A stretch of 64,000 nucleotides of DNA. Source: Epiperipatus broadwayi (Eukaryota; Animalia; Onychophora). Position 1 is the stretch's first letter. The number at the start of each line of letters is the position of its first letter. Positions 4,054 to 60,059 of this stretch are shown here, one piece after another. The position numbers and the translations under genes are program-made. The notes beneath the pieces were generated by a model. That model had not been told where the DNA came from and searched no databases. It saw only the letters and a program-made list of their open reading frames with translations. The stretch covers positions 15,376,001 to 15,440,000 of the forward strand of contig JAQFVV010000010.1 of NCBI GenBank assembly GCA_028023455.1, read 5' to 3'.

Positions 4054-4260
4054 CTATATACCACCATGCCCTTATTTAATAGCCCACAGGTTTGGGTGGC
4101 ATTTGTAACAGAATGAAAATATGAAATTAATCTAGACAAAATTCATTTCCTTACCATTCCTCATTGGGGCAGCCACTCACAATGGATCAATTGTTTTAGA
4201 TCAATAACCATGTAAGCAGTTTTATACTCCAATTGGACAAACCACTCTATTCCTTTCCTT

Positions 4261-6365: not shown

Positions 6366-6424
6366 ATCCAATATCCCCAGACTAGTTTCTGTCTTGTGGC
6401 CTTCATTAGTGAGGAGCCTTGGAT
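6366..6424 (-). ncRNA. Type I hammerhead ribozyme, family B, core-mutated (CUAAUGA)
   Basis: Reverse complement reads ATCCAAGGCTCCTCA-CTAATGA-AGGCCACAAGACA-GAAACTAGTC-TGGGGATATTGGAT. G5->A, so probably inactive. Confidence 0.7.
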
Positions 6425-6764
6425 CTGAGAACACCGCACCTAGATCTTAGGATCTTATGCAACCCTCCAGCAGCCACCTTTTATCTCCACTTAACTATAA
6501 AACTATGAGTCTTAAACTGAAAACACCTTAATGTTTTCAATCCAAACCCATTAGCTTATATAGTCATATAGGTCTGAAATCAGTTCAGTACCCATACATT
6601 CTGGTGTCTTTCATTCTTTAATAACCATAACTACCATTATCCTATTATGCAGGATTGGTTTTAAGCCAATAAACATCACATAACCACTACTTCTTATGCT
6701 TGGGTATAACTGTTGTTAAAACAGGCAAAACTCACTATACGTATTGCCACACACAGCTAGCTAG

Positions 6765-6823
6765 ATCCAAGGGTCCTCACTGATGAAGGCCACAAGCCAG
6801 AAACTAGTCTGGAGATATTGGAT
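6765..6823 (+). ncRNA. Type I hammerhead ribozyme, family B, intact core
   Basis: ATCCAAGGGTCCTCA-CTGATGA-AGGC CACAA GCCA-GAAA-CTAGTC^TGGAGATATTGGAT. Palindromic stem III ACTAGT; predicted GUC cleavage after 6809. Confidence 0.85.
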
Positions 6824-19260: not shown

Positions 19261-21990
19261 AAAGATTTTTAGGTGACAAGTTACCAAGTGCAGTAGAGTT
19301 ACGATCTATAATTAATCAGTTTAGCCTGATTTTTTTGGAGTTTCCAGCTGTTATAGCTGGGTTCCAACAGAAAATTAAATTAAAGGATGACCAACCCTTT
19401 CAATCCAGATCGTATCCTATTCTGTACCAATATCAGCAGGAAATATCCAAACAGATCAATAAAATGCTGGATTGGGGGATCATTTCCAAATGCTCTTCAC
19501 CTTACTGCAATCCAGTTGTAACTGTGAAGAAGAATGATGGGTCGATGAGATTTTGTTCCGCAGCTAACTGTTCCAGACAGAAATCTGCAATCCAGTTGTA
19601 ACTGTGAAGAAGAATGATGGGTCGATGAGATTTTGTTCGGCAGCTAAACAAAATTACTGTTCCAGACAGAAATATTCCACCACCCATTCATGAGTTGCTC
19701 GTGAGATTTGGAAACAAGAAGGTATTTTCTACCTTTGATCTAACTTCCAGCTATTGGCAGATCGAACTCCATCCTGATGATTGCCAGTATACTGTTTTTC
19801 AGTATGAGGGTTTTACCTATCAGTTCAATAGGATGCCATTTGGATTGATCACTAGTGGCGCTGGTCTGATTAGATGCATAGATAAGACCCTTTCTCCTGA
19901 GGTTAAGTGAATCGTAACCATTTATGTGGATGATGTGATTATCGCATCTTCCACCATTGAAGAACATCTTCAACAGCTCACCATATTTTTTCAGGAGTGC
20001 TTTCACAAAGGGATAAGAATCAACTACAAGAAAAGTATCCTAGTATCCGATCAGGTAGTCTTCCTAGGTCATATTGTAGGTTGTAATGGGATAGCACTTC
20101 ATCCAGACAAGATCTCTGCATTCAAAACTTTCCTAGGCCTATTAACAAAAAGCAAATTCAGTCATTCTTAGGTTTGTGTAATTTTTACCACCATTTCTAC
20201 AAAACATTTGCTGACCACATGGAACCTTTATTGAAACTAATCAGGAAAGAAGAGAAATGGAATTGGACCAAGGAATAGGAGAGGGCCTTTGAAAATATCA
20301 AAACAGGGTTTTTACAACAAATAATTTTGGTCTTCCCTGATTTTGATAAACTATTTGTCATTCAAATTGACAGTAGTGGTTTTGGGTTAGGGGTAACATT
20401 ATCCCAAATCCAGGAGGATGGTCAACCAGGTGTCCTCTGCTTTATCAGTAGACTCCTGAAAGGTCCAGAGTTGAATTATATGGTAACTGAGAAGGAGGCA
20501 CTAGCTATAGGGTGGGCCTTCCAGAAGTTCCGACAGATGTTTCTCGGATCTGAGGTGATAGTGGTTGCAGACCATAAATCCTCAAATTCTTGAACCACAG
20601 CTATTTGACCAACAGTTGCCTAGTTAGGTGGAGTCTGCTGTTGCAGGAATTTAATTATACTGTGAGGTATTGCAAAGGATCCGAGAACATAGTAGCTGAT
20701 ATATTTAGTCGGAATCCATGTCAGTCAGATCAAAATATCTATCTGTAGAAGATGCCTATATTACAAATGTCGACTTAATAATCGATAGTAATGTAGAGAA
20801 TAAATTGGTAAAGTTACCCAAATTACAATTTGAAGATCCAAATTTAAACTTAGTCATAAGAGCCCTAAAAGGAGAGGAAGTTTTGAATGTGCACAAGAAT
20901 TTTATACTTTATAAGATAGAAAATCAGGTCTTGTTCTATAAAATTTATACAAATACTGTAGAGTGGAGGGTAGTGATACCTACAATTTTACGCGTCCCAC
21001 TCATAAAGTACATTCACTGTTTGTATGGACACTACGGTGCCTGTAAAACAGAACATACTATAAAAACTTGGTTTTACTGGCCAGGTATGCATAAAGATAT
21101 CTTGAGAACACTCCAAGATTGTATAGTATGCCTAAAAGCTGAGACAGTGAACCAAAATTTTAGTGAGGCATTAAAATCTATAATTCCTGAGAGACCAAAT
21201 GAAACCTTGGAGATTGATTATTATGGACCATTACCTCCATTCAATAAACAAAGATATCTCTTGGTCGCCTATGATCCCTTTTCGAAATATGTCTCTGCTC
21301 ATCCTATACCCCAGGCTAATACCAAACACACAATCAGGGTATTAGACAATCTTCAATTTCCCAAAATAGGAAAGCCTAAAACTGTTTTGACATACCATGG
21401 AACACCTTTCCTATCTAAGGAATGGAAAAGTTGGGTGGAGAAATTACAAATTAAACACGTACTCACTTCCATTAGGAATCCATAGTCAAACCCTTGTGAA
21501 CGCGTAATGCAGGAGCTTGGCCATTTGTTCAGGACTTACCTAAACGATGCGCATAGGGAATGGGTGAAGCAGACAGAATGGGTAGTGAATTTCATTAATT
21601 GGGGTGCAAATGAATCTACTGGATTTGCACCAATCCAACTACATTTTAACCAACTTATTCCTTCATTATTTGTAAAATACCAGCCTCCAATTGAATGTCA
21701 TCACTATGACATAGAAACTAAAATTCAAATGGCTCGCCAACAGTTAATTAATAAATCTAATTTTAGAAATAAGAAGAGGAAGAAAAGTAGACATCACTTT
21801 AAGATTGGAGACAAGGTATTTGTGAGAACACATCACCCAAGTAAACCAATGGATAATGTTTATCATAAATTTTGTCAACAATATGCTGGACCATATGCTA
21901 TTGTGAAACAAGCTGGCCCAAATGCATTTTGGTTAAATGTTGATGGAGAAATAAAAGGAAGTTATAATGCTTGGATATTATAGCCATACA
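19260..21990 (+). pseudogene. pol: Degenerate Gypsy pol (RT - RNase H - integrase), frameshifted
   Basis: RT motifs FSTFDLTSSYWQI, RMPFGL, YVDD. RNase H segment DSSGFGLGVTLSQ...NYMVTEKEALA. Integrase HCLYGH...CIVC, IDYYGPLP, ERVMQEL. The RT-RH-IN order indicates Ty3/Gypsy. Confidence 0.93.
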
Positions 21991-22622: not shown

Positions 22623-25600
22623 TGGAAAAAGATTTATATTTAACAATTTATATGTGTGTATATAAAATCTAATGATGCAATTTTGCTAATTAAGTGTCAT
22701 GGGATCTTTCTATCTTCTTGGTGTCAATGGCAGGTGATGAAGTATAATATTCATTGGTATGCCCAGTGTAAAAATCAATGAGGAATAATTTGGAGATAAA
22801 TTGGAAAGGCTATGGCTACAAAATCAAAAGCCCAGGAATTCGATTTTGTCGTGGGAATTGCTAAATGGTTAGAATTCTTAATAGGATTCAATATGTATGA
22901 ATAAATGAAAGACACTATCTGCTAAGAACACTGAAGCCACTCTTGAAAATTTAACTTGCTATTGTTTTAACTACTTCAGCTTCAAGCCGCCATATTGAAC
23001 TTTTTAAAATACTGGCCTGATACACAATTTTCACAATAACTTCAGTTTTAATTATGTTAGAGCAAAAACAATTACATTGCTAGAAACTAGAAAAACTAAG
23101 GAAAACAATAAGCATAAAATAAATAGTGATAACTATATAAAAAATAAGGAAAAAAAGAAATTTTCACAACCGAAATAATTATTATTTTATTGCTTGTTCA
23201 TAATTTGGAAATTAACATTAACTAAAATGCAAATTACATCTTCAGTGATAATTTCTTTGTATTCCTCACAAAAAAATCTTTCTAAAGATATATAATAAGT
23301 CTTACCTGAGATAATCCATAGCTTTACAATGTCTGAAAATGTTCCTATAAGAGTTCTTCATTTTTATCTTCTACCCCAACTGTTGCAAATTGTCAAGGCG
23401 CCTGGAAGAAAAGAGTTCTCCCTAATAAAAGATAAAAAATAAAAAAATTAAAATTCTAACAGAATATAAAAATAATGAAGGAAGTGGAAAATTATTACTT
23501 ACCATTATAAATACAATAAAAAATAAAATTCATCATCATCATCATAGTACAGGTATATTATATTATAAAAATGTGTATATTATGAATCATGAAAGTTTCT
23601 AATTTATGAAAACTCAAAAGCCTTTAAACAAGATGCACTATTTTCATTTTAGACTTTATAACAAACCTTTTATAACATCATCATCATACTGAATAATCAT
23701 CCAATACAGAAAACAATTTACAAATTTCTCATTTCAAGAGGCAGACAATGATTACTAAAAAGGTTCTATGCAGATATTTATATAAAAAAATGTTTATATT
23801 CTACCTCTTCCAAGATACTCTTCAGAAACATACCTTTCATATACTAATATAAATATCAAAATATTTCATCATGCAGATCTTTTTACCAATTGGAAAAAGT
23901 AATCAGTAATGAAGCTGAAACAAAGTCTAATAAGAAGGAATCAGCAGTCATATCCTATAAAGTATAAAATGAAGTTAGTAAAAAAACAAGTTAATAAAAC
24001 AACAAATAAAAACTAAATTAGTAAAACAAAAACAATGAAAACATGTTAGTAAAACAAAAATTAGTAAAAACAGAATAAAAAAAATTACTCATTATATACA
24101 ATCAATTTCTGAGAGGAATAAATTGTAAATAGTCTTGAATCAGTGTGTCAACCATTACATTTTTACTAAAACAAACCAACAAAAAAAACAATAACAAAAA
24201 ATTACCTTTCATAGTCTACCTATCACAGAGTAAAAAATCAGTCAGTCATTTTCAGTGGCATATTTATTAGTTTCTTCATAATAGTTGATAAAAGTTTTTT
24301 ACAAATAACATTAAAAAAAAAATCTAAAATTGAATACTTACCTACTATAGAAAACTTCAAACCTGGAGTTTTAGTAAAATTCTCTACATTCACAGGTTTG
24401 CAGGTTACGTTCGGACACAGATTACTGTTACTAGATGAAGGGCCTGGCCTATTGATATCGTTGGGAACACTTGTTGACGGGCCTGGTGTATTGATATCAT
24501 CCAGAAAAGCACTCGTAGTTTTTCTTTTGGCTGGTAAAGGAGTTTCTTCTTCTGATGGCGAAAAATATTCTTCAAGATCACAACAACTAACACTATCCTC
24601 GGAGTCAAAGGGCTTAGATGGGACAAATTCATCACCGCTGGAATAATCCGTATCAGAGGCCATCATGTCCCGTTCATTTATTTTGCGTACTTTTGTTTCC
24701 GCTAATCTAACAAATTGTGAAAAAAATTTTTTAAAAAATTGACCTTATTCGCAAAAAAATTAATAAAAATTTTATTTTTAACACAGAAAAATGGCGACAC
24801 CTACGAAAAGAGGAAAAACGCGAAGAGAATATGGTATAGGCGCATGCGTAGCCTATAGTTTTTCCGTAATTTTAAACAGAAACGAACCAACAAACGAACA
24901 TTAACCGCAACGCGCCGACAAACCGAAGAGTTAAAGAAGTCCAAGATTTCAATTAATGCTTATAAATGTTTTAAATTTTGTATTTTTTTTTTTAGTGTAT
25001 ACTGAGAGTTGAGTTACAAGTTTTCTCACCCTGTTATTCATTCGCAGAAAACATTTTTTTTTTAAAAAAAGAACCCATTTATTTAAATTTATATAACGGA
25101 AGAGAGATACAAATACACAACTCTAGGGATGCATAGAAAATTTTTTTGTTTGTAAATAAAATATTAACATAATTGGACGCATTAAATGGACAATGACTTA
25201 GAAGACAAAAGGTAAGATTTTACACATATACATATTAATTGGACTTACTAATAAGTAATTTTATATAAATACATTTTCTTGTTTGCATGAATAACCATTT
25301 ATGAATGAACTATATCTACAAAACACAAATTAGCAATTCATGGATATAACCTTGAAATACATTTAAAGGACATAAACAAAATGATAATTGTACATCTATT
25401 AATATAATTTCATATTTAAAATAATTGATACTTTATTGTATATTATGCACTATAATTTTATAATTTTTATTTCAATTGATATTTTAATATTTAAATCACA
25501 GCTAGTCTTATTGTAGTAAAGACAAATCAATATTTTATTATATCCATGTATATATTTTATTAATTTATAAATATTATAAATTTAACCCCGATTTGTTAAT

Positions 25601-25900
25601 AAATATTTGTTGTTTGAAGTTAAAATCTTTGTTTCTCTGGTCTCTAGATTATTAAGCATCATTCATACTTCACTCACCAGAATAGCTATTATACATGTAT
25701 ACAGATTTTTAATATATTATTAGCAATAGCCATTAAGGATCTATATAGAGGTCATATTATTGCCATCCTATTTAAATCCATCCTTGAGTAGAGTTAAAGG
25801 CAAATGTCTACACTGAGTTAGAACCCCAAGTCATAATAGGACCTGTAAGTAGAGAAGGCTCTGGGTGTACCATCTTAAAGGGTTTTTCCGGTCCATTACA
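22623..25900 (+). repeat. 3' LTR of Gypsy element, interrupted by a piggyBac-like insertion
   Basis: Matches the 5' LTR on both sides of 22971-24930. Ends ...CCATTACA at 25900. Confidence 0.85.
22971..24930 (-). mobile_element. piggyBac-like element (deleted/degenerate transposase)
   Basis: TTAA duplicated at 22967-22970 and 24931-24934 where the 5' LTR has one TTAA. Imperfect CT(A)CTTC.G.. termini. Minus ORF 24238-24666 has an acidic N-terminus, then DFF...(frameshift)EETNKYA, typical of PGBD/DDE_Tnp_1_7. Confidence 0.8.
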
Positions 25901-31123: not shown

Positions 31124-31320
31124 AAGCCAATAAACATCACATGACCACCACCTCTTATGCTTGGGTATAACTGTTGTTAAAACAGGCAAAACTCACTATA
31201 TATATTGCCACATACAGCAAGCTAGAGTAATCAATGGATGCCAGAAGGCTTGTGCATAAAATCCCCATCTAGTGCCTACTCATCCAATATTCCCAGACTA
31301 GTTTCTGGCTTATGGCCTTC
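31124..31320 (-). mobile_element. Family B insertion truncated inside the HHR core
   Basis: Matches the unit from AAGCCAATAAAC to GGCCTTC. 13-bp TSD CTTCTTTTTTTAT (31111-31123, 31317-31329), with 4-bp overlap with the element. Confidence 0.88.
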
Positions 31321-31770
31321 TTTTTTTATTCTATAAAATACACAAAATTAAACTTAAAAATTTAATCCAAATCCTTCTTGTTATTCATGCAAACATTTGA
31401 AGACTTTTCTCATTTCTCGTAAATTTGTAAACACACCAAGGCTTGTAAATGTTTGTTTGATTTTTGCCCTCTCCTTTTTTGGTAATTTTTTGAAAAAGTT
31501 ATTTGAATATAACTATGTTGAATATATTTAAATGTACGTTTTCCTTTTTTGTTTTGTAAATACAGCAAAAGATGTACTTTTCAGATAATTTTTATTTTAT
31601 TTTATACAATCTCAAAATTTTACATATTTTGACCCCTTTTCTTTAAATATATATTATACATTGTAATTCGAAATTCTATCTTATTTAGATAATTTAGAAA
31701 ATAATCTAAGCAATACTATATAATTATATTTATTTATAAAATTAAATATACTTTTCTTAGACAATTGTAA

Positions 31771-38339: not shown

Positions 38340-38442
38340 TTCTCATGTGTCATAGCATCAGCCGGGAAGCGAACCCGCTAACCCAGGTCAACTGCTTGTA
38401 AAGCAGTTGTCACTGACCTCTCAACCACCAATGCTTGACAAT
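38340..38442 (-). mobile_element. tRNA-Gly-like SINE, second copy
   Basis: Reverse complement: GCATTGGTGGTTGAGAGG...GGGTTCGCTTCCCGGCTGATGC-TATGACA. TSD ATTTACACTTT (38328-38338, 38443-38453). Confidence 0.75.
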
Positions 38443-41400
38443 ATTTACACTTTAAATATGTACCTGCACAGACAGTCCAGAAATACTGCAAATACCATTT
38501 TTAAATTTACCACCAAATTAATCATATAATATAAAAACGGAGGAATAATCTTCCAAAAATTTCACTTTCATAAAATTATTAACTATAATTTTTTTTATTA
38601 ATTCTGAAATTTATGGAAATATTATTCCCGCATTGCTATCATATATATATATCGACAAGATAGCGCGTAGAACTTAAGTAATATTTTTTTTATTTGTATT
38701 TTTAATATCTTCTAAATTCTTTTTGAATACAATAATGTTCTTCTCATTATCTATTCTTTTTTATTCCCATTAATTTATACACTATATTGGATACTTTAAT
38801 AAATTATTTCTGCTTCTTTCCTACTTAGACAAGCTGTGCCTTCATTTTAGCCATTTACCTTCTGTGACCTTTTACCTAATCTAACCGTTATAATCTCAAT
38901 AATTCTGCTTCTTTGTGTTCTAATCAGATTAAACAAAGATTTTTTTTTACAGCCCTAACATTAGAATCTTGAGCTGATATTACACAATTATTTATAACAA
39001 TTCTTAATTTCTCGATGAAGAGGAGTAGAATTTTTCAATATCTTCTTTTTTTAATTTTTTATTTAATGCCCTCGATTTCAAAGATCATCTAGAAATTTGA
39101 AAATATTCACAACCTGATAGAGAATATGTTGTCTGAAATGATTGCTATTCCGCTGTTTTTCAAGGTTAAAAAAAAAAAAAAAAGTATTTAAATCAACACG
39201 TGTTAAGATAAGATATATATATAAGGTTAAAATTATTTCTTTGCTATTTGGATGATACAAATTGCTGAATTATGGAAGCCACATTAATAGTATTCTATCA
39301 GTATATTATTTAATATAATATTGTAAAAAAAAAAAAGAAGTAATTACTGTATATAAATTAATTAGTAAAAAGTACTATAGAGGGAACTATTTACAAAGTA
39401 TGACCTTAGAAAATTAAAATGCACATGACAATTTTTACAAATAAAATAGTGATATAAAGATATGGGGGGGGGGTAATTAAATAAATTTACAATAATAACA
39501 AAAAAATGAATAATAATTAAATAAAATTGTATATTATTAATCATCACTACTGTATGGAGAGTTTTGCCTGTTTTATTATTTATCATCACAGTCATTCTAA
39601 ATGAGTATGGGCCATTCCAATTCCAAGAATAGAAAAGAAAGAAAAACAAAGTAAAAGTAATATGCTAGAAATGAGTTTGGTGAAGGCTATACAAATCAAT
39701 CCGTAAAATCCAAATATGTCCACATACAATACAAAACACACTAGTTCATTAATCTATTTGATATTTTGCAATGCTGTCCTTTAACTATTTCTGCAGTGAA
39801 CTTAGAAATACCGTGATTCTCTAATTGTAGCTCTTTATTGTATTCTACTTTCAGCCATATATTTCTAATAAAAGTATATGTGAATTAAACTTATAAACAG
39901 GGTCTGCTTCTTTTACAAAAAAAAAACCTATGCTCTACCAAAAATTACTCATTTAGAAAGCCTATTATTGGTCATTCAATTCACATGTCCAATCCAATGA
40001 GAATGTGATTTAAATCCAACAAAGCATCACATGATCATCATTTCTATGACTTCACAAGCAGTTATTAACAATGTGATGTGATGTACTGTAGCTTCTCCTT
40101 AAACGAGATCAAGAATATCTCAGCAATTATGCCCAGGTAAACTTGTTAGCCACTTAATTTTCCATTCCCCACTCTAAGTTTTCCCATATTCTGCTCCATC
40201 CCATTTCCACAACATAATCTTTGTCAACTCTATGGCCTTTATATCTAAATCCTTCTTATCTTTTCCCAAACCCAGCATAAAAACCAATAATTCACTTTCT
40301 GTATAATCACTTTTTTCATATTTATTCTTCCATAACTTCATTATGTGTAACCTTTCAGTTTTCAAGCATTTACATTCAATTATCAAACTCTCCAACAGTA
40401 GTGCCACCCAGTGCAAGCTTTAGTAATCAATGGATGCTGGAAGGTTTGTGCACAAAATCAGCATCCTTAATTTTTTTTCTAATGTCTTTATATTAGGTTA
40501 ATAGAGAGTCCAATTCTCACATTCGTGAAATAAATTGGGTAAAATAATAGATCTATGTATAAGTAATTTAGTTTCAGTATTTATGTCACTGCATGAAACA
40601 TCTTTCCTTTTCCATTTTTTAAATGCAGTATCATTTTAAAGTTTGTATTTCATCTCAACATCCAAGTCTGCTCAATCATCCACAGATATTTCTTCCATTA
40701 CTGACTATCTTTATATGTTTTATTTGAAATGTTAAGTCCATTTTATAGACCATTTTTGAATTTGCAAGGATATCAAAATCAGCACATTATAAATCTAATC
40801 ATAGGCCGACCAGTATGGTGAAAAAACAAATATGAAATTTATAAAATGATGGATAGGTGCCCATATAGTATATCACATATTTAGCAATCCAACAAATGTT
40901 CCCCATTAGTTGTAGTCATAAGATTTGCATACAGTAGTTGTCCAAATCATAGATTGAAAACAACATCACAGGCAGAAGGACGACTTGAAGTGTGATTATT
41001 AAATACCATGCAGCAATGAAATGATCACTAGGTCAAATGTTAATGAGTCAAACAGAATATTACCTGCAAGATCTAAGAAACCAGATCAGAAAATGAAGCA
41101 AAAAGACAATCTAAACATCTACCAGTTTATCTCAAGGCTTATATAATCTAAAGCTAATCTAAGATAGGGAGTATGTTGTGAACACATAATAAATTTCAAC
41201 AATGGACCTGTTCAAACTATAAACTGGATTCAGAATAAAACACAGTTGGCCAAGGAAACAACAATAATATAAATAAATAGCCAATGGCACAAACAGGTTA
41301 ATTATATAAGAAGATCAGTCACACTGATTCTTCAAAGCAAGATAAGAAGATGTGGCTTTAAAACGTATGTCTATTTGAGTGAATCAATAGTTATTGAGCC

Positions 41401-42243: not shown

Positions 42244-43514
42244 TTACAATTATATGATGTAAATAAAGTAGTTTTTGGTCAAATGGTGCTTTTATTTTTT
42301 CTTCCCAACATTTTGATGAGATAACATCCGCCACTGTCAAGGTTAATTTTTCAAAGAAAAACCATTAGATCTCAAGTAGTAACGAGATTGAGTGTGAGGT
42401 AAAGAATGAGATGGAGTGTGAAGTAGTTGAGTATTCAGAAATGTAAATTAACAATATGTTTATTTTTTGGGGGGTTTCATCACTAATTAATTTCCAAATT
42501 TATATTAGAAGAAAGAAATAAAATAAGTGGTCTCCATACGGCTGGAATACATTATGCTTCATCAGCTCTATTTAAATCAGTTGGTCTTTTTAATATTTCA
42601 GCACCTTCCTCATAATTCTCAAATCATAGTTTTCCAAATTAATAAATATTTTAGCATTATCAAAATCAGGTTTGTGATCAATTTCTAAAAAATGTGTAAA
42701 AAATAAAAAAAAAATGCATTTAAACCTAAACAAAGAAAGAACATCGGTTGTAATTGGTTGTTAGTGAGCTCTCAGCCGAAAAAGACATTCTGATTGGCTG
42801 GAAAGAACAAAGAAACCGCCTGATCAAAGAAGTAAAAACTGATATATTTAACTTCTGAGTAAAGGCATTTTGATGTTCATTAATTCTAACATTAATTCAT
42901 CTATTAGACTGATGTACATAACTTTTCAAGCATTGTAAACATGGAATTGTATAAATATCCTGGTATTCCAAAAGTACTCTGTCTTTAGGTTTATGAAAAA
43001 AATCACCATTTTTTTTGCTAGTGGAAAAAGTAGACTTTATGCTAAAATTAGATAGTTTTCTACTGATTTTTTCAGAGATTCCTTTAATATAAGGTAAAAC
43101 TTACTCTATAACTAGTTGAATTATCAATTTTATCCTCTTTCTTCTTTTTAACATACAAAAGATTTTTTGTTACAGAAAATATTTGTACACGATGATGATG
43201 AGAATTAAAATATCTGTTTGTATGGGTGGTTTTTCTGTAAACTGATATTGATAAGAAATCACATTTTCTTGCAATCAAAACATCTTGAAAAGAAAGTGAT
43301 TTGTTAATTTCAACTTCCATAGTGAACTTAATATTAGGATGCCAATCATTAAGAAAAACAAGAAAAGAGTTCAAAGCATCAATACTATGAGGCTGTAAAA
43401 CAAACATATCATCCACATATCTGATCCAAATAGGTTTGTTAGTAACTGCATTTAATACCTGACTTTCAAAATTATTTATGAAGAGATCAGCAATTATAGG
43501 TGACAGTGGATATC
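42244..43514 (-). mobile_element. Left arm of palindromic Penelope-like element (RT C-terminal half, GIY-YIG, 3' UTR)
   Basis: Reverse complement encodes (G)xPLSPIIADLF...WIRYVDDMFV...WHPNIKFTMEVE...VYRKTTHTNRY, the PLE RT signature. Mirror of 43549-46020, with an internal ~150-bp deletion and a ~135-bp insertion. Confidence 0.88.
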
Positions 43515-45484
43515 TCTTAGAAAGTCATTTAATTTGTTTATACTTTGGGATCTCCACTGTCACTTGTAATTGCTGATCTCTTCATGAATAATTTTGAAAG
43601 TCAAGTATTAAATGAAGCAACTAAGAAACTTTTTATTTAACTCAGATATATGGTGATAAATTTGTTACATGACCTCATGGTAAAGATGCTTTGCACTCTT
43701 TTCTTAATGATTGGTATCCTAATATTAAGTTTACTATGGAAGTTGAAAATAACAAATCAATTTTTTTTCTAGATATTTTAATGGCAAGAAAATGTGATGA
43801 CTCCTTAGCAATATTGGTTTGCAGAAAATCCACCCACACAAACAGATATCTTAATTTTAATTCTCATCATCATCCTGTGCAAATATTTTCTGTAGCAAAA
43901 AATCTTTTGACAAGAGCTTGTAGTTTGTCTGATAAAGATCATCTGACTCAAGAAATAGAACTAATAAAAAATATTCTACTTGCTAACGGTTACAATAAAA
44001 GCATAATATATAGGGTGTTGTACAGCAATATTAAAAAGAAGAGGATAAAATTGATGATTCAACTAATTATAGTGGTTTTACTTTATATTAAATAAATCAT
44101 TGATAAAATCCATAGAAGACTATCTAATTTTAACATAAAGCAAAAAAATTGATTTTTTCCATAAACCTAGACAGAGTACTTTTGGAATACTAGGATGTTT
44201 ATGAAAATTCCATATTTACAATGCTTGAAAAGCTATATAGGTCATAATAGATAAATTAATGTCAGAATTAATGACCATAAAAATGCCTTTAATCAGAAGT
44301 TAAATACATCAGCTTTCACTTCACATTTTTTAGAAATTTGGCATAAACCTGATTTTGATAATGCTACAATACTTGCTAATTTGGAAAAGTATGATTTGAG
44401 AGCCATGAGGGAGTCGATTAAAATATTAAAAGACCAACTAGTTTATCACATGATCACCATTTCTTATGCTTGCTCTTAACTGTTATTAAAACAGGCAAAA
44501 CTCTCTATACGTACTGCCACTCATTGCAAGCCAAAATAATCAATGGATGCCAGAAGGCTTGTGCATAAAATCCCCATCTAGTGCCTATTCATCCAATATC
44601 CCCAGACTAGTTTTTGGCTTGTGGCCTTTGTCAGTGAAGAGCCTTGGATTTGAGCACACTGCACCTAGATCTTAGGATCTAATGCAACCCTCCAGCAGCC
44701 ATCTTTTATCACTACTTAACTACAAAACTATGATACAAATTAAACACATTATATTTTCAATCTAAGCTAATCAGCTTATATAGTTATATAGGTCTGATAT
44801 ATAGTCATATAGGTCTGAATGCAGTTCAGTATCTATACATTTTGATGTCTTTGGTTCTTTAATAACAATAGCCACCACTATCCTATTGGGCAGGATTGGT
44901 TTAAAGCCAATAAACATCACATGATCACCATTTCTTATGCTTGCTCTTAACTGTTATTAAAACAGGAAAAATTGCCACTCAGTGTAAACCAGAGTAATCA
45001 ATGGGTGCCGGAAAGCTTGTGCATAAAATCCCCATCTATTGCCTACTCGTTCAATATCCCCAGACTAGTTTCTGGCTTTCATCAGTGAGGAGCCTTGGAT
45101 CTGAGAGCACTGTACTTAGATCTTAGGATCTAATGCAACTCTCCAGCAGCCACCTTTTATCTCTACTTAACTATAAAACTATGAGACTTAAATTGAAAAC
45201 ATAATATTTTCAATCCAAGCTCATCAGCTTATATAGTCATATAGGCCTGAACTCAGTTCAGTACCTATACATTTTGGTGTCTTTGGTTCTTTAATAACCA
45301 TAGCCATCACTATCCTATTGGGCAGGATTGGTTTAAAGCCAATAAACATCACATGATCATCCATTCTTATGCTTGCTCTTAATTGTTATTAAAACAGGCA
45401 AAACTATTGACATTCGGTGCAAGCCAGAGTAATAAATGGATGCCAGAAGGCTTGTGCATAAAAGCCCCATCTAGTGCCTACTCG

Positions 45485-45540
45485 TACAACATCCCCAGAC
45501 TAGTTTCTGGCCTGTGGTCTTCATCAGTAAGATTTGGATC
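45485..45540 (-). ncRNA. Type I HHR, family B (core intact, stems weakened)
   Basis: CTGATGA-AGACCACAGGCCA-GAAACTAGTC-TGGGGA on the minus strand. Confidence 0.65.
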
Positions 45541-45584
45541 TAAAAGCACTGCACCTAGATCTTAGGATTTAATGCAATCCGCTA

Positions 45585-45630
45585 CACTGATGAAGGCCAC
45601 AAGCCAGAAACTAGTCTGGGGATATTGGAT
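45585..45630 (+). ncRNA. Type I HHR, family B, in inverted arm (5' stem I mostly lost)
   Basis: CA-CTGATGA-AGGCCACAAGCCA-GAAACTAGTC^TGGGGATATTGGAT. Confidence 0.65.
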
Positions 45631-46945
45631 GAGTAGGCACTAGATGCACAAACCTTCTGACATCCATTGATTACTCTGTCTTGCACTGAGTGGCAAAACA
45701 TACAGAGTTTTACCAACTGGTATAAATAGAGCTGATGAAGTACAATGTATTCCAGCCTTATGGAGACCACTTATTTTATGTTTTTCTTCTAATATAAACT
45801 TGAGAACAATTAATGGTGAAACGGAAGAAAATAAACATTTTGTTAATACTTATATTCTGAATGCTCAACTACTTAATGCTCAATCTCATTACTATTTGAG
45901 ATCCAATGGTTTTTCTTTGAAAAGTTAATCTTGACAATGGCAGATGTTATTTCTTGAAATGTTGGGAAGTAATCAAAAATATCACATAGTTTAACCCCAA
46001 AACTACTTTATATATTGTAATAGTAAAATGAAAGAATTAGTTTGTAGGTAAGATTGGGGGGGGGGGGATTAAGACAAATACAACAATAACATATTTAAAT
46101 ACAAGAGAAGCAATTTAATTTTTTATTTGTAAAAACAATCTATTATCCTTTTTATATACTCTTCTAGACATCCATATTATTGATATTAACCATATATCAA
46201 TCAAAAGAAATGTCACAACTCCATCATCTAGCCTAGTTTTTTTTTAATAATTTGGTACTGCAAATTGATAAAAATAATTCATTAATTCTTTTGTAAATAA
46301 GAATGCAATTTCTGCTAAAATAAATATTTTATTTGTTATCAAAATAAAGTAAGATATTGTATATTATTTAATACTCAACATATTATATTACATTATACTG
46401 TTGTGCAATTGTTTAATAATGTCAGAAATAAACTTGATTAAAATGACTTGCGAATATCTGAATGCTGAAAAAAAATTAGATACAGAAAAAAAAAATTATG
46501 TGAAATTGTCATATCCTCAGCATATAAAAAAAGGCAAAATTATGTGACTGGCAAAACTTCTAAAATGTCTATCTAAATAGGATTTTCTCCAAAATCCTGT
46601 TTCAATTCTCAAAAACTCCTGGATGATTTATTAAGATTACCCTGGAAAAAGAAGAAGAAAACTAATCAGGGAATCACTTATGGGATAGAAACAATGATGT
46701 GACAATTTTATTTTAACATGGCTCACAAAGGATTCAGTTCTTTGTATTGGCAAATCCTGGAGTCCACCTTATCGATCACATGCTTATGTTTTCACTGAAC
46801 TGTCTAAAAGAAAGAAATGTCACATTTTATTTTGTTATACAGAAAAAAATCTATGTATTATAAAAATTCTTATTTATGTATGATTATAATATTTATAAAG
46901 CAATAAAAAACATTTATAATCTGGATTTTAACCTATCCTATATAA

Positions 46946-49765: not shown

Positions 49766-49910
49766 CTGTATAATGTTATTTATTCTATTTAGAATATGAT
49801 AGTTAAACTTAAGAGTATGCTAACGCTCTAAACAAGCTTTTTTTTATTATTATGATAAATGCTACTACAAGAGAAGGCATTCAAATCATCTTTATCTTAG
49901 ATTGTCCCCA

Positions 49911-49951
49911 TCCCCAGACCGGTTTCGACCTATGGGTCTCTTCAGTGAGGA
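49911..49951 (-). ncRNA. Canonical minimal type I hammerhead ribozyme, family C
   Basis: Reverse complement: TCCTCA-CTGAAGA-GACC CATA GGTC-GAAA-CCGGTC^TGGGGA. All core nucleotides present, 4-bp stem II, palindromic ACCGGT stem III, 6-bp stem I. Confidence 0.92.
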
Positions 49952-52146
49952 GTTAAGAAAAATCTAGTTATAGTTATAGTCAATTTATTTATAAATAGAT
50001 TATTTTAATTTCATTCTGTTATGAAAATAATATTATTTTTTTAATATGTGTGTGTGCAGTTATTGGGCTGAATATAATTTTTCTATAATCTATGCCAGTT
50101 ATACTAAAGAAAATGGGAGACAGTATTGAAAAATATTTATTCATATATAACTTGCAGTATATTCACAAATTAATTTTAAATATTTATAGCATGTATTCTT
50201 ATGTGAGATATTTTACTTATAAATTTATTTTATGGGAGATTCTAATGAATGAATATTAGACATTAAATAGATATACAAAGATAGAAATATGAAATACCTG
50301 TTTGTTTAAATTATTTATTAACTTAAAATAATTCAAGAATAATATTAGTATTTATACATGAACTTGTAATCATGTTATGCAATTGATTGATAGAGAATTT
50401 ATTCAACACTATTATTGTATAAATCCTCCAGACAAGATCATTGTGTTATGAGGTAATTAAAGTTTTATATATTTGTCTCTGAATCAAAGATGCATTTGTT
50501 TAAAGAATATTAGGTAGAGTGATCATCGTTTAACCAAAGGGATTTGGATCTTGTTAGTCAATGGAATACTTTATTATCTCTTACAATAATATGCAATCAT
50601 ATGGGTTTGAAAAAGAATGTATTTTTAAAATGAATGCATTTTATTATGTGTGTATTTGGCATATTATTAAACATGTTAGATTGGTGAATAGACAAATTCC
50701 ACAATTTTTCAATCAGAACAGAACATCAGAGTTCTCTCAGCATAAAGTTATGCAAGATTAGTATTGTTTTGCTGAGCCTGGCTGGTGTTATGCACGCATA
50801 TCTTCATGATATTCTATACATTAACCTATAAAGAAATAAATACAAATATAAAAAATGGGTATAAATATTAGGTCTTACATTGTTTATCAGTCTTTATCCT
50901 TATAATACACATTGTATGAGTTCCACAATATATTCAGAATCCTTATTAATTCCAGATACCCAAAATCTGATCATTTATTTATTTTTTTACAGTAGCTTGA
51001 TTTTATAATTAAAATATAATTACAAAAAGATGTATATATAAAGTTAAGTTTGCATTAAAATAAAATTTGTTGTTAAATATAATGCATATCTCATTATTAA
51101 CAAATGTCTCATCTTCACAACCATGAATTACAAGAATGACTAATATTAATGGAATATATATATAAAAAAGGAAGATTATGTGCATGCATAGAGCGAATTT
51201 GTGGAATTTGGGTAATGTGTTTGCCGATGCTCATTATTTTATAAAGAAACTGCATTGAATATGCCAACTTATTTTGTTACATTGGGATTTATTTACTTTA
51301 TAAGAATTCGATTTATCAGTTACCACAGATCTTTTTAAACAAATGAGGCAATTTAAAGCATTGCATTTATCAAAGAATTGCCAAGTATACTCGAAATGAT
51401 TTTTTTTTCATTATATCTCTACTACAGATTAATATTATTTATAATATTTGAAAACATAAATATATTTATTAGCACTCTTAGTGGATCAAATTATAAAGAT
51501 AATTGATGCATATCTCCACTGATAGTTTGTTGATTGATCAGTCTCTCTATTCATAAATCCAGTGCAGATCTGTCAAAGTATATTTGTTTACAACTTTAAT
51601 TAACGTTCTATATGCATATGTATAAAAGCCTCTTTCTCACTTTCTCAGTACAATATAAGCTCGCAAAAAAAAAAAAATAATAATCATTACGAAAATTGTT
51701 GTTATATAATAATTTGTATTTCATAGTTACTCCATAATAACTTTTAAGAAAAAATATTAACAAATATTGGATCTATTCCCCCCCCCTCCCAACCTCCACA
51801 TTAGTTTCACTATTTTTCTTAATACAAACTTAGTCAATTTGGAAATTTCCTTAGATTGAAGCTAAAATAATTTTTTAAATGTTAGTATTCAGACTAAGCA
51901 TTCAATGAATTATTTAGATATATTAATAAGTAATTTTAAAATAACAAAATACAATAAAAAATGTAATTACTGATTTTTTAATCTTCTTAAAAAAAAAATA
52001 CCAAATTTAATATTTTGAACATTGAATAACACTTATAAGCAAAAAGTGTAACTAGCCTTTCTTAGTGAAAATAATCTTCTAGGGAAGAAAGTGTAATTGA
52101 ATTGATGAAAGAAAATTGCATAGTGCAGAATTCATAATTAGGGTTT

Positions 52147-56436: not shown

Positions 56437-58381
56437 ATAAATACAATGGAGAGTTACATTTAAACAATGTCTTTCAGAAAAACATTTCTCAAAAGTTAAA
56501 AAGTAGTATCGTAAGATCTCAATTAGCATGTAATGTATAAATAAATTTGTTTTTAATGCAATCTATATATCATTTTAAAATTCAGTTTTATCAAAATCTT
56601 TTCTTTTTATTCTTTTTTTACTTTTTCACTAGAATGGCTACAGTCATTTACAAATGGTCTCTAATGAATGATGTTCATAATTTAATTAATTAATAAGTCT
56701 CATTCAATATATTAATATATTATTTTACTTCTCAGATAATTTTTTTTCCACATGTATGGCATAATTTTTTTTATATTTCTCAATTTCAAGATTTTAAATA
56801 TGCTGACTTACATAATTAGTAGATTGTTTTTTCTTTTAAATTTAAATGCTAGCCATGTAATATTGGAGAGAAAAATATAAAATAAAGTCATTAAAAAGAA
56901 TAAGTATGAAATTGTTACTTTAAAAAACTATAACTCATAAAATATTAATTTCAGCACATAAATTATTGAAAATTATTAAACTAAGTATTACTTACTAAAG
57001 GCTCAATCAAGTATAAAATATTTTTCTGCATAGGCTCGAAAAAAATTTTCTTTAGACTCGGATTGGTTCTTGAAAAGTTTATTTCAAGCAAATGATGGGA
57101 TTTGAAAAATCATAAGATCTCCTGATATTTGTAGATAGTAGTCTAAAAGTAGCCTAATCATACAATGATCAATGGAGAGTTGGTTGATTGGCCAAATTAG
57201 AAGTCATAATTGACAAGATACTTATTCTTTCCCAAAACTTATACTTGGAAGATGTTTTCAGCATCCACCACATCAAGTATCAAAAATGTGTCCAGAAGAT
57301 TCCAATTTATCAATGTTTGATTTCAATAGTTTTAAAATATTTAACAAATAAACTAAAATTATCAAGATGAAGAGAGTGATCTAATTCATTCTTTATTTAA
57401 AGTCAAGTTAATAAAAATAAATAAAATTAAGTTTCGTTACAAAATACATAATATAGTTAAATTAAAAAAATTCACACATAAAAAATAGAAAAAGAATAAA
57501 TATATTAACGCAATGACAAGTGAACTTTGAACTCAATAATAAGTAAAAATTACAACAGTTTAAAAAACCTATAAAATCAAATTAAACATAATAATCAATA
57601 GCCATTTACTTGGCATTATTTGATGCAATGGAAAGTGGAAAACTCTGAAGCCCAAGATCCATGGATTGTGGCCCACCTATATCACTTTGAATGCTTGAAT
57701 TCTTAATGAATTCCAAAGGAATAAATTACCATTTATTTAAAAGCCATTTAATAATTAAAAATAGTAAGGGTTTTGCAGTAATTGAGCGTTCCAATCCCCA
57801 CACATAAAAGAAATTTAAATATTTACCACGTACTTGCCAGTTTTATTTAACTCTCGTTTGATTACTTTCTACAAGGCAAAAAATAAACATCTTCCATACA
57901 TAAATTTCAATTACTATTTATTTATTTTCTTTTTATAGTTTCCCAGAATTAATCTTATTGGTTTTCATTTATTTCAGACCAACATTTTTCGCTATTATTT
58001 ACTATGAAGATAACAAAATGCCTTGACTCAAGATATAGTAATTAGCAAATCTGTTTGCTATGTTATTAATCTGAGTTCAATTCTGAGCTAATTGAATTTA
58101 TTTTCAGGTCACTAAGCATGCTCAGGAATTTTCTTTCAGATAACCATTTCATCTATTTTTGTTTCTTAAATGGGTATATTGTTACTATTACTAATAGAAA
58201 TTTCTCAATCTGGATTAGTTAGATAAGTATCAAGTTCCTGACTAAACATAAATATATGATGCAATCTTCACAATTGGGAGGAGAGATATCGTATTCTTAG
58301 AGGCATTGCAGGTGTTGTACCTTACACACTTTTCAATATTTGGATTCACTTAAGTTTCTTAACTGAGAACTTTTATTTATA

Positions 58382-58633
58382 ACAGGCAAAACTCATTATA
58401 CATATTGCCACACACAGCAAGCTAGAGTAATCAACGGATGCCACAAGCCAGAAACTAGTCTTGGGATATTGGATGCATAGGCACTAGATAGGGATTTTAT
58501 GCACAAGCCTTCTGGCATCCATTGATTACTCTAGCTTGCTGTGTATGGCAATACGTATAGTGAGTTTTGCCTGTTTTAAAACAGTTATACACAAGCACAG
58601 GAAGTGGTGGTCATGTGATGTTTATTGGCTTAA
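58382..58633 (+). mobile_element. Family B insertion (short inverted 5' arm plus truncated sense copy)
   Basis: Junction at ~58441. Sense copy lacks CUGAUGA. TSD AACTTT(T/C)ATTTATA (58368-58381, 58634-58647). Confidence 0.88.
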
Positions 58634-59662
58634 AACTTTCATTTATATCAACATTTTCTTTTTCTTTGAGAATTTTTGTACTATTTGTAAAAAATCATAA
58701 TAATCCATTTTTATTGGCTGCTTATCATAATTTATTTTAGAAAATCTATTTTCATTGGTGATTCATCATTATTTATTTTAAAACATTGATTGTTGATCAC
58801 TTTTTAATGGCAATATCTATCAATTTTATATAATTTTTTTGATAACATGTCAATGAGTATAACATTGTAAACTTCTTGATATAAATCTAACTTACAGCAT
58901 TTCATTAAACTTAAAATTATTTCTTAGTTATATTATATTTAATGCTTTCACAGTTATATGATGTAAACGTTATATTTTTTGGGTTAAAACATTAGTAATA
59001 CATGGTTTAATCCCAAAAATGTATATATGTATAAAACCATATAATACAGGAACTAGTTGCTATTAACTGAATAAGTATTCTTTGAGGCCTTAAAAAGCTG
59101 AGTAAGGCAAATTACTGTCTACTCCCTTATTTTTAGATGTTAGTATTATGTGACTATCCATACAATAAATGAATATGGATGGATTGCTCATTAACATTTG
59201 ACTTTATCTCTGAATACTTCTCAAATACTTGATAGTTCTTAAGAAAAATCTTACTTGATTATTCTTAAAGGCAGAACAAATGTGTGAATGAATGAACATT
59301 CTTTTTTATACTGAGTCTCCTTAAGGTATCAATCCAAGGTAGCAGATGGAGATCAAAAACAATGGTGCTTGCTTTTTAGTGATACTTTTTATTTTAAAAA
59401 TCATTTTCATGTGACAGGAAGATGGTATGAATTAGAGGAACTATCTAATATTAAATTTTCCATTTAACATCTTCAAACTTAATGATGTTAGAAGAAACCA
59501 CTAAACATCACATGATCACTATCTCATACTAGCACAATAATTGTTATTAAACAATTCAAAATACAGCAAAACTCTCCATATAGTAGTGCCATCTTGTGCT
59601 AACAAGAGCAATCAATGGATGCCAGAAGGCTTGTGCATAAAATCCCTATCTAGTGCCTACTC

Positions 59663-59721
59663 ATCCAATATCCCCAGACTAGTTTCTGGCTTGTGGCCTT
59701 CATCAGTGAGGAGCCTTGGAT
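59663..59721 (-). ncRNA. Type I HHR, family B, intact
   Basis: ATCCAAGGCTCCTCA-CTGATGA-AGGCCACAAGCCA-GAAACTAGTC^TGGGGATATTGGAT. Predicted cleavage between 59677 and 59676. Confidence 0.88.
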
Positions 59722-59749
59722 CTGAGAGCACTGCAATTAGGGCCTACTC

Positions 59750-59808
59750 ATCCAATATCCCCAGACTAGTTTCTGGCTTGTGGCCTTCATCAGTGAGGAG
59801 CCTTGGAT
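59750..59808 (-). ncRNA. Type I HHR, family B, intact (tandem duplicate)
   Basis: Identical to 59663-59721. Predicted cleavage between 59764 and 59763. Confidence 0.88.
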
Positions 59809-59849
59809 CTGAGAGCACTGCACCTAAGATCTAGGTGCAGTGCTCTCAG

Positions 59850-59908
59850 ATCCAAGGCTCCTCACTGACAAAGGCCACAAGCCAGAAACTAGTCTGGGGA
59901 TATTGGAT
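59850..59908 (+). ncRNA. Type I HHR, family B, CUGACAA variant (G8->A)
   Basis: CTCCTCA-CTGACAA-AGGCCACAAGCCA-GAAACTAGTC-TGGGGA. Confidence 0.7.
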
Positions 59909-60059
59909 GAGTAGGCACTAGATAGGGATTTTATGCACAAGCCTTCTGGCATCCATTGATTGCTCTTGTTAGCACAAGATGGCACTACTATATGGAGAGT
60001 TTTGCTGTATTTTGAGATGTTAGAAGAACAGACAACTAGACAATTGATTTGAAAAATGG

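Follow-up and report, generated by a model that had tools for sequence, protein, structure and literature searches.

Family B of Epiperipatus broadwayi, a candidate non-LTR retrozyme with a Penelope-like insertion footprint

Judging from its sequence, the ~455-nt repeat that we call family B is likely a non-autonomous element of the non-LTR retrozyme kind, which a Penelope-like element (PLE) inserted through its reverse transcriptase-endonuclease, with a ribozyme part recognised at the level of a motif. The kind is already known from the animal retrozymes, and family B is not a new class. It was found in a 64,000-nt stretch of the onychophoran genome (contig JAQFVV010000010.1, positions 15,376,001 to 15,440,000; hereafter, the window), where the original prediction had described it as a non-coding mobile unit with a hammerhead.

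The unit measures 435–458 nt, has a GC content of 38% and is non-coding as proposed, no stop-to-stop frame in a dimer exceeding 52 aa. Its RNA folds much better than shuffled versions (z = −5.8), and the local hairpins that had been named are present in it. A 35-nt core of the unit occurs in 30,788 exact copies in the genome, compared with 0 for a reversed control, and a first look with the unit gave more than 5,000 matches spread over many contigs. The copies are dispersed, and long arrays were not seen; each arm of an insertion holds one to three units and reaches at most 1,384 nt (locus L011). On contig C1, same-strand core matches were spaced by 456 nt. Family B or close relatives also appeared in several labelled organisms from four studies (Logan contigs from four runs of uncertain library type). 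Units within one arm are 0.88–0.94 alike, compared with 0.884 ± 0.035 between loci, values that discriminate little in an old family; because the family is too old, unit similarity has no power to separate rolling-circle copying from tandem transcripts.

Insertions of family B in the window

The most extensive copy, at 44446–45711, is a 1,266-bp insertion with a 13-bp target-site duplication on both sides (left copy ACCAACTAGTTTA, 44433–44445; right copy ACCAACTGGTATA, 45712–45724). The host repeat has an uninterrupted paralogue at 42250–42750 on the minus strand, and when the two flanks are aligned to it they share 13 nt of its sequence, which shows the block to be an insertion and the boundaries given earlier to be exact. 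One contig of the X2 run, whose library type is uncertain, skips 44431–45711 and represents an empty site. BLAST and arm chaining resolved the insertion into two arms, whose 3′ ends lie at two preferred positions of the unit, sites A and B (see below). The long arm (44446–45577, minus strand) holds 2.5 tandem units in ribozyme sense, at 44446–44905, 44903–45337 and 45335–45577; its 3′ end lies near site B, the tail end, at 44446, and it is truncated at the 5′ side at 45577. The short inverted arm (45585–45711, plus strand; 126 nt), joined to the long arm 5′ to 5′, runs from just ahead of the CUGAUGA core to the neighbourhood of site A, at 45711.

The tandem periods reported earlier were reproduced by two direct-repeat families. 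Copies of the family D1 lie at 6221, 31136, 44445, 44903, 45338 and 59517, with spacings of 458 and 435 within 44446–45711, and D3 gives a spacing of 454 (6262/6716) near 6210–6928. Tandem Repeats Finder did not report the periods 435–458; the units are merely ~83–86% alike and carry indels. The copy at 44446–45711 appears old, at ~9–17% divergence from other copies, and its ribozyme motifs appear dead. Matches of this region to microRNA precursors in Rfam were rejected as an artefact, the inverted arms making the hairpin that was scored.

When one unit was searched against the window with BLAST, matches were obtained at 6209–6900, 31124–31311, 44445–45696, 58445–58631 and 59495–59970. Together with the arm ends, these give four further insertions where the unit had been placed before (6210–6928, 31124, 58382 and 59497). 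The second insertion, 6210–6928, has a minus arm (6765–6210) that ends at site B, a plus arm (6765–6928) that ends at site A, and a 14-bp duplication with one mismatch. The third (31125–31322, minus) is a single 5′-truncated arm with its end at site B and a duplication of 10–11 bp, CTTTTTTTAT(A). The fourth, 58368–58630, consists of a short A arm on the minus strand and a B arm on the plus strand within a 14-bp duplication, and the fifth, 59498–60012, of a B arm (minus) and an A arm (plus) within a perfect 13-bp duplication. Of all motif copies in the window, only two satisfied every check on core and helices, and both belong to this fifth insertion, where they lie in an 87-nt internal duplication (minus strand, cores at 59793 and 59706).

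Insertion footprint and coding partners

We compared 29 loci from the genome with the five in the window. Nearly all of these 34 loci are a pair of diverging arms joined 5′ to 5′. Of ~80 arm 3′ ends, 69 fell at two places, 34 at reference positions 390–410 (site A) and 35 at 440–455 (site B), ~118 nt and ~170 nt beyond the ribozyme cut, respectively. The 5′ ends were variable and scattered across the entire unit. As the 3′ ends are fixed and the 5′ ends truncated in this orientation, the ribozyme-bearing strand is the template strand. All 24 insertions with a clear duplication of 11–16 bp combined one A end with one B end, offset by 54 ± 4 nt, so that the two arms differ by a tail of ~50 nt at one end only. 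On contig C1, where core matches were listed without selection, the 11 close pairs on opposite strands all diverged and none converged.

The predicted hammerhead cut, GUC|U at reference positions 285|286, does not appear to define these ends. Only 4 of 85 arm 5′ ends lay within 10 nt of it, compared with 17 at reference positions 240–270, and the insertions neither begin nor stop at GUC, their arms crossing one to three ribozyme cut sites. Since the arms run through the GUC site, the templates were apparently copied into the genome uncleaved or re-ligated. Most full-length arms begin just beyond site A and thus comprise one unit plus ~48 nt of terminal redundancy, and the inner junction between arms differs from copy to copy.

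This footprint matches the published one of PLEs, which animal non-LTR retrozymes are thought to need for their mobilisation (PMC7229834; bioRxiv 10.64898/2026.07.22.740005), in agreement with the original prediction. PLE insertions are typically 5′-truncated, contain partial tandems, adjoin an inverted 5′-truncated copy and carry a tail at one end (PMC8557442), all of which is also seen in family B. In the Anolis element PAc, both DNA strands are cut and extended, and reverse transcription starts internally at two sites ~85–92 nt beyond the hammerhead cut, the tail being the stretch between them (PMC11167929); family B resembles it in having two apparent internal starts downstream of the cut. 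Family B differs from PLEs in the absence of a reading frame, in the length of the tail (~50 nt versus 30–40) and in the distance of the start sites from the cut (~118 and ~170 nt versus ~85–92). The pairing of an A end with a B end, which holds strictly in family B, did not show up as a strand difference for a PLE in vitro (PMC11167929).

The genome is rich in PLEs, with more than 10,242 GIY-YIG candidates, of which we inspected 38 loci (30 with GIY-YIG and eight with long frames). No PLE protein was present within 1.5 kb at 28 of the 29 family B loci, so that at these 28 loci the coding PLE named as the case against the original prediction was not seen attached to the unit within that distance. 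Chance nearby insertions aside, none of the 38 PLE loci shared the 3′ module of family B from ribozyme to tail. A decayed family-B-like fragment ~1.9 kb upstream of the PLE frame at L081 was rejected as an unrelated insertion, being absent from the sister copy L082. The intact PLEs sampled carry a different, minimal hammerhead with a U3–A8 core, whereas family B has the canonical layout with a C3–G8 core. The minimal hammerheads of PLE pseudo-LTRs are likewise of type I, need a second copy to form helix III and occur in PLE-type insertions, but they combine a long helix II (6–8 bp) with a short helix I, compared with 4 pairs and 6 bp in family B (PMC4209133).

Three other origins were weighed against these data. 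The inverted arms make long hairpins at practically every insertion, as the terminal inverted repeats of a fold-back DNA transposon or MITE would. However, the arms are unequal, each ends on the outside at its own fixed site within a single oriented unit, and single-arm 5′-truncated copies exist; together with the variable inner junction and a duplication that varies between 11 and 16 bp, this makes such an origin highly improbable, and the same holds for a satellite, given the dispersed copies without long arrays. We give equally little credence to a SINE mobilised by a LINE. Family B is short, non-coding, high in copy number, 5′-truncated and flanked by target duplications, but its 3′ ends lack a poly(A) or simple-repeat tail, Rfam found no tRNA, 7SL or 5S head, and 5′-to-5′ double arms with a one-sided tail are unlike the footprint of a LINE. 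A third reading takes the unit as merely the pseudo-LTR of a coding PLE and the copies as its truncated pieces, with no separate non-autonomous family. PLE pseudo-LTRs do bear hammerheads and PLE insertions are heavily 5′-truncated (PMC8557442), the PAc hammerhead and its reverse-transcription starts sit at the junction of pseudo-LTR and ORF in a geometry like that of family B (PMC11167929), and the 38 loci inspected are a tiny part of more than 10,000 candidates. Nevertheless, arms with up to three complete tandem units and no reading frame between them, the results of the partner search and the other hammerhead type of the intact PLEs leave this reading improbable. A separate, non-autonomous family mobilised by PLEs is the account we prefer.

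The hammerhead motif

A consensus built from 73 copies contains a type I hammerhead motif, and at this level the stems described in the original prediction, the palindromic stem III and the GUC site were all recovered. Helix I consists of 6 bp, an internal loop and 6 further bp; the core reads CUGA(C/U)GA, GAAA follows on the 3′ side of helix II, and the GUC site follows helix III, which is one pair with a palindromic CUAG cap. What the earlier description lacked is the state of helix II, whose four pairs stand on an A·A mismatch at the base (10.1/11.1) in place of the usual G10.1. A mismatch at the base of helix II is also known from HHR_Amex2, an axolotl motif that still cleaves (PMC7229834). 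The helix I of 6 bp, the four pairs of helix II and the single pair of helix III with its palindromic tetraloop fit the canonical, dimer-acting metazoan type I design (PMC4209133). The newt and axolotl motifs share with family B this helix III of one pair and a palindromic tetraloop, a design active only as a dimer.

Core, GAAA, UH site and helices I and II were retained in 35 of the 73 sampled copies, and the palindrome as well in 29. The hammerhead region was no better conserved among copies than its flanks (0.923 versus 0.921), and in the thermodynamic fold of a single motif part of the core was base-paired and the active shape did not form. In a sister family, family A, a motif at 49945 (minus) has an identical helix I, a helix II altered by paired substitutions and ACCGGU in place of the palindrome ACUAGU. 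When the proposed hammerhead was checked with Rfam, none was found at the gathering score in the whole window, nor at E ≤ 10 in 44300–45900. The sole match was to Hammerhead_3 over the two intact tandem copies (59677–59771; 24 bits, E 0.005), below the threshold of 48.5. The Rfam hammerhead models cannot score a single copy because helix III is loop-less.

In the tandem units the ribozyme lies on the minus strand of the window, and a plus-strand motif is confined to the 126-nt inverted fragment. One hammerhead per full unit, as originally predicted, holds for the motif, but all four copies in 44446–45711 are mutated or truncated. The copy at 44590–44650 (minus; core at 44634, alignment row WIN_44663; nominal cut between 44605 and 44604) appears dead, with CUGACAA in the core (G8>A) and AAAA for GAAA (G12>A). 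At 45048–45101 (minus; core at 45085, nominal cut between 45063 and 45062), 7 nt are missing from the 5′ strand of helix II. The same deletion recurs in L004, L020 and L023; as a subfamily marker it was rejected, as its carriers do not cluster, and it is uninformative on the spread of ribozyme-dead units. The copy at 45483–45540 (minus; core at 45527, nominal cut between 45498 and 45497) has an intact core and a decayed helix I, in which a 3-nt deletion breaks the outer stem, and an A·C mismatch in helix II. Finally, the copy in the inverted arm (45587–45631, plus; core at 45587, nominal cut between 45616 and 45617) retains core, helix II, GAAA and GUC, but helix I is impossible because the arm starts inside its 5′ strand.

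It is conceivable, though on balance we doubt it, that the hammerhead is a catalytically dead relic, retained as part of an RNA module that the PLE protein recognises, and that no ribozyme-processed circles are made. The A·A pair at the base of helix II and the sub-threshold Rfam score would suit a relic, although the axolotl motif, mismatched as well, does cleave. The cut site is ignored by insertion ends and by inner junctions, and helix-II-deleted copies occur at four independent sites; both point in the same direction, as do the PAc ribozyme mutants, which insert normally, the lack of RNA-seq reads ending at the PAc cut (PMC11167929) and the poor cleavage by PLE hammerheads in vitro (PMC4209133). 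On the other hand, the family ancestor and 29–35 of the 73 copies kept every core nucleotide along with the palindrome and helices I to III, and the sister family retained the fold through paired changes.

Relation to known retrozymes and a possible mechanism

Among known repeats with type I hammerheads, Sm-alpha of Schistosoma and satellite 2 of newts measure ~330 nt, are SINE-like or tandem in nature and occur in both dispersed and tandem form; their ribozymes have been shown to cleave. Family B likewise has a type I hammerhead in dispersed and tandem copies, but it bears no sequence relationship to either, and its hammerhead is known from sequence. The animal non-LTR retrozymes (PMC7229834; 10.64898/2026.07.22.740005) resemble it more broadly: their units are non-coding, low in GC and a few hundred nucleotides long, each bears one type I hammerhead, and they are found as monomers or in short tandems flanked by target duplications of >4 bp; their RNA is highly self-paired, and PLEs reside in the same genome. 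Family B differs from them in the A·A mismatch of helix II, and in its short arrays of one to three units per arm with, as a rule, two inverted arms. The original prediction had placed it toward the large end of the size range; this holds relative to the 170–400 nt of the 2020 paper (PMC7229834), which 455 nt exceeds, but not relative to the 51–972 bp of the 2026 preprint (10.64898/2026.07.22.740005), within which it falls.

We propose that the reverse transcriptase-endonuclease of a PLE copies a structured non-coding RNA of ~455 nt into the genome. Both nicked target strands would prime reverse transcription internally on this RNA, with the two starts situated in potential small hairpins, and the two cDNAs would be joined in the middle. 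The copied template may be a multimeric transcript, or else a circle closed at the hammerhead site. Helix III should be formable only between two hammerhead copies, and the hammerhead probably trims multimers to single units, which a host ligase might then close into circles, as has been shown for other retrozymes. The ends of the genomic copies would be set by something other than the hammerhead, and insertion may not require it. More tentatively, and with less than even odds, family B may record Penelope-type integration in vivo, with both start sites used once, one per target strand. If so, the insertions would fit a dimeric enzyme gripping one RNA at two hairpins. Another fit would be with a template of defined extent, ~500 nt long, whose end redundancy would let the enzyme jump templates and so build tandems. 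On this reading of the family, the hammerhead would have no role in mobilisation.

Family B is a very large family of hammerheads, with at least 30,788 exact cores in an invertebrate genome that is AT-rich and measures 5.6 Gb, and helix II of its motif is of a variant form overlooked by standard models. It poses no question beyond the published work on retrozymes and PLEs. Its thousands of clean insertions could nevertheless serve to test the proposed PLE mechanism, with priming on both strands and two internal starts, on a genome-wide scale, and could reveal whether hammerheads matter for mobilisation.

Insertion boundaries and arm architecture

The element at 44446–45711 lies within another interspersed repeat, present on the plus strand at 44322–44445 and 45712–45985, of which an uninterrupted inverted copy is found 1.6 kb away within 42250–42750 (42286–42696, minus strand). 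Alignment of the flanks to this paralogue delimited a 1,266-bp insertion in a 13-bp target duplication (44433–44445 and 45712–45724), and one contig of a sequencing run (X2, Logan contigs) jumps 44431–45711, so that the coordinates of the original prediction proved exact. The predicted tandem periods of 458 and 435 nt were recovered by a direct-repeat search of the window as the spacings between in-register copies of one repeat family (D1) at 44445, 44903, and 45338, with other copies at 6221, 31136, and 59517. In agreement with the other copies listed in the original prediction, BLAST of one family B unit against the window found four other loci (6209–6900, 31124–31311, 58445–58631, and 59495–59970) besides 44445–45696. 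The unit is also non-coding as proposed, its longest reading frame being 52 amino acids even as a dimer. Its GC content is 38% (25–33% for the window overall), and the reference copy contains 0 CpG vs 15.6 expected. Short, diverged fragments related to family B (63–86% identity, a weak BLAST match) were also seen at 40012–40052 and 40373–40459; these could derive from an earlier insertion or from a related family.

Using a natural 455-nt copy as ruler (L002:1501–1955; core at 256, cut after 285), we defined arms, each one cDNA copy within an insertion, as chained BLAST segments in 29 genome loci and the 5 window loci, with boundaries refined by target duplication. Nearly all insertions have two arms that share an inner junction, from which their sense strands diverge, and the outer 3′ ends fall into two narrow classes, site A (ruler position ~400–406) and site B (~450–455), with 34 arms ending at 390–410, 35 at 440–455, and ~12 elsewhere. 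Clear target duplications were found for 24 insertions (11–16 bp, mostly 13–14 bp); all 24 have one A end and one B end, offset by 54 ± 4 nt, and none is A+A or B+B. The insertion at 44446–45711 obeys this rule, its minus arm ending near B (446) and its plus arm near A (392). At 31125–31322 there is a single 5′-truncated arm with a 10–11 bp duplication. Among the first 100 core matches listed, unselected, on one genome contig, all 11 close opposite-strand pairs ran minus then plus, that is, diverging, and none converged.

The inner junctions, formed by the 5′ ends, are scattered over the unit with an excess at 240–270 (17/85), and only 4/85 are at most 10 nt from the ribozyme cut. Many full-length arms begin just past site A, the upstream piece being most often 408–455 on the 455-nt ruler, and 393–434 or 383–435 on the 435-nt window unit, whose position 434 equals ruler position 455. 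The most frequent full-length arm thus consists of one unit with ~48 nt of terminal redundancy. As the longest arms reach three units (1,384 nt, L011), arms cross the ribozyme cut repeatedly.

Other elements share the window. The family B insertion at 6210–6928 sits between inverted copies, 7 kb apart, at 3150–3879 and 10903–11620 that match over 457 nt (90% identity) and in adjoining blocks; the element to which these copies belong has an RVT_1 fragment (ORF 3212–3712, minus strand). Direct repeats of ~1.6 kb with 95–96% identity at 15142–16733 and 22623–25900 flank ORFs that encode integrase zinc-binding, rve, and Tf2-1 SH3 domains (20718–21983, plus strand); together they make up a Ty3/gypsy-type LTR retrotransposon. 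The T arm region of a tRNA-like sequence at 38354–38434 (minus strand; Rfam tRNA, 36.8 bits) contains a 12-nt insertion; this sequence may be a tRNA gene or a SINE head.

The hammerhead motif and its decay

Across 73 copies, of which 7 are in the window and 66 at 29 loci elsewhere, the majority sequence contains the predicted type I hammerhead motif. Helix I has an outer stem AUCCAA/UUGGAU, an internal loop of GGC opposite UA, and an inner stem UCCUCA/UGGGGA; the core reads CUGA(C/U)GA; helix II (A.A, G-C, G-C, C-G; loop CACAA) is followed by GAAA; and helix III is ACUAGU, with A15.1-U16.1 under the palindromic tetraloop CUAG, followed by C17 and U1.1. This matches the canonical metazoan type I layout, with a 6-bp helix I, a 4-pair helix II, and 1–2 bp of helix III under a palindromic loop, and such motifs are thought to be active only via a joint helix III of two copies (PMC4209133). 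Helix II is mismatched at its base in both family B (A.A) and the axolotl HHR_Amex2 (U.U), 22% of which was cleaved in 1 h as a monomer (PMC7229834). In the minimum-energy fold of a single family B motif, part of the core is paired. The tandem units carry the motif on the minus strand; only the short inverted piece at 45585–45711 has it on the plus strand.

That each full unit carries one hammerhead was upheld at the level of the family consensus; in the insertion at 44446–45711 itself it holds for the motif only, as none of the four copies is intact. Only the motifs at 59706 and 59793 pass all checks in the window. They lie at 59651–59822, where an 87-nt tandem duplication within a family B arm has left two fully intact motifs 87 nt apart. 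Core, GAAA, UH site, and helices I and II are kept in 35/73 sampled copies, and the palindrome too in 29/73. Conservation among copies is 0.923 in the motif vs 0.921 in its flanks, as expected for neutrally decaying copies. Core position 7 was ancestrally C; the dinucleotides there (CG in 24 copies, TG in 35, and CA in 12) carry the signature of CpG decay. Four of the 73 copies, at independent loci (window 45048–45101, minus strand; L004, L020, and L023), show a 7-nt deletion in the 5′ strand of helix II; overall identity does not group these carriers together, suggesting that slippage between AAGGCC and AAGCC has recurred rather than that they form a subfamily.

Rfam did not bear out the hammerhead, giving nothing at gathering score in the window and nothing at E ≤ 10 in 44300–45900. 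Its sole hammerhead match, sub-threshold, is a type III reading (24 bits, E 0.005) at 59677–59771, which spans the two intact motifs, whose palindromes can pair within one strand.

Mode of insertion and alternative explanations

The footprint of family B is the one described for Penelope-like elements (PLEs), namely strong 5′ truncation, partial tandems, and an inverted 5′-truncated copy adjoining the 5′ end, with a short tail that is often at one end only (PMC8557442). The protein of PAc, an Anolis PLE, cuts and extends both DNA strands; reverse transcription starts internally at two adjacent stem–loop sites 111–118 nt into the reading frame, and, as the hammerhead cut is 26 nt into the frame, ~85–92 nt past the cut, the tail being the stretch between the two sites (PMC11167929). 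Family B has the same geometry without a reading frame, its start sites lying ~118 and 170 nt past the cut. Sites A and B fall within potential 5-bp hairpins (CUGUU/AACAG and AUUGG/CCAAU), each pattern occurring 64 times in 29 loci, and the start sites probably reside in hairpins.

The insertions directly display the polarity of the template, the double-arm footprint, two fixed 3′ sites used once each, the target duplication, and read-through of the cut site. We infer that reverse transcription would be target-primed, with both nicked strands serving as primers and two internal sites as starting points, that the two cDNAs would then be joined, that the template may be multimeric or circular, and that the hammerhead, as a dimer, may trim or circularise the RNA. 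Folding predicts a high degree of structure for the unit RNA (−147 kcal/mol vs −114 ± 5.7 for shuffles; z = −5.8), with the ribozyme in a long quasi-rod like that described for retrozyme RNAs (PMC7229834). A run search returned ten runs, each with 7–15% of the sampled words (Logan contigs, the "RNA?" type being guessed); the four runs mapped, from four labelled organisms and four studies, contained thousands of family contigs, which as contigs give no molecule starts or ends.

For the ribozyme part, the main rival, which we regard as less likely than not, is a relic motif retained within the protein-recognition module. In PAc, ribozyme mutants left insertion unaffected, and no RNA-seq reads ended at the ribozyme cut (PMC11167929). 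A second hammerhead family in the window, family A, lies at 49890–49960 (minus strand), with core CUGAAGA at 49945 and a canonical G10.1-C11.1 helix II. Its inner helix I is identical to that of family B; helix II differs yet is paired (GACC/GGUC), and the palindrome is ACCGGU vs ACUAGU. As these differences are paired, they argue that the fold, palindrome included, was selected in the ancestors of both families. Genome-wide, 14 family A variants were found with an additional palindrome base, and at 13 of their loci no PLE protein was matched in the 1.5 kb around.

It appears very improbable that the family B unit is no more than the pseudo-LTR of a coding PLE. The genome holds more than 10,242 GIY-YIG candidates, and the family B ribozyme or tail was found in none of the 30 best loci, bar two chance insertions nearby. 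We also inspected 8 further loci with long PLE frames. An intact high-copy PLE family (L075, L077, L078, L081, and L082; tandem open frames of 871–901 amino acids) bears a minimal hammerhead between consecutive frames, ~300 nt after the stop of one and ~250 nt before the first Met of the next (for example, L075:968–1010 and 4103–4145), which, unlike that of family B, has a U3-A8 core (UUGAAAA), a helix II of at least 6 bp, and an ACGU palindrome. We rejected L081:154–242 as a partner link, this being a decayed family-B-like fragment with a weak match, absent from the sister copy L082. Because the sampled PLEs lack the family B module and no PLE protein lies within 1.5 kb of 28/29 family B loci, family B behaves as a stand-alone non-autonomous family, in a PLE sample that is very small. 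A fold-back DNA transposon, a satellite, and a LINE-dependent SINE each fit the insertion footprint poorly.

Abundance, age, and class of family B

One unit gave more than 5,000 first-look candidates in the 5.6-Gb assembly, the best 40 being 85–91% identical, and exact matches to a 35-nt stretch, which begins at CUGANGA and extends to where the helix I 3′ strand starts, number 30,788 (reversed control, 0). Since a near-central natural copy (L006) had no match above 95% identity among the scored candidates, and unrelated copies average 88.4% identity, the family is either old or of only moderately recent origin, and the insertion at 44446–45711 is a decayed copy.

The retrozyme interpretation stood as regards class, given the PLE footprint and no attached coding PLE at 28/29 loci, and fell short in the insertion itself, all four of whose hammerheads are damaged. 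Family B falls into a class already described, the animal non-LTR retrozymes, for which descent from PLEs as non-autonomous derivatives is now argued (10.64898/2026.07.22.740005), and the coupled use of two start sites is the one feature that may repay genome-wide study.
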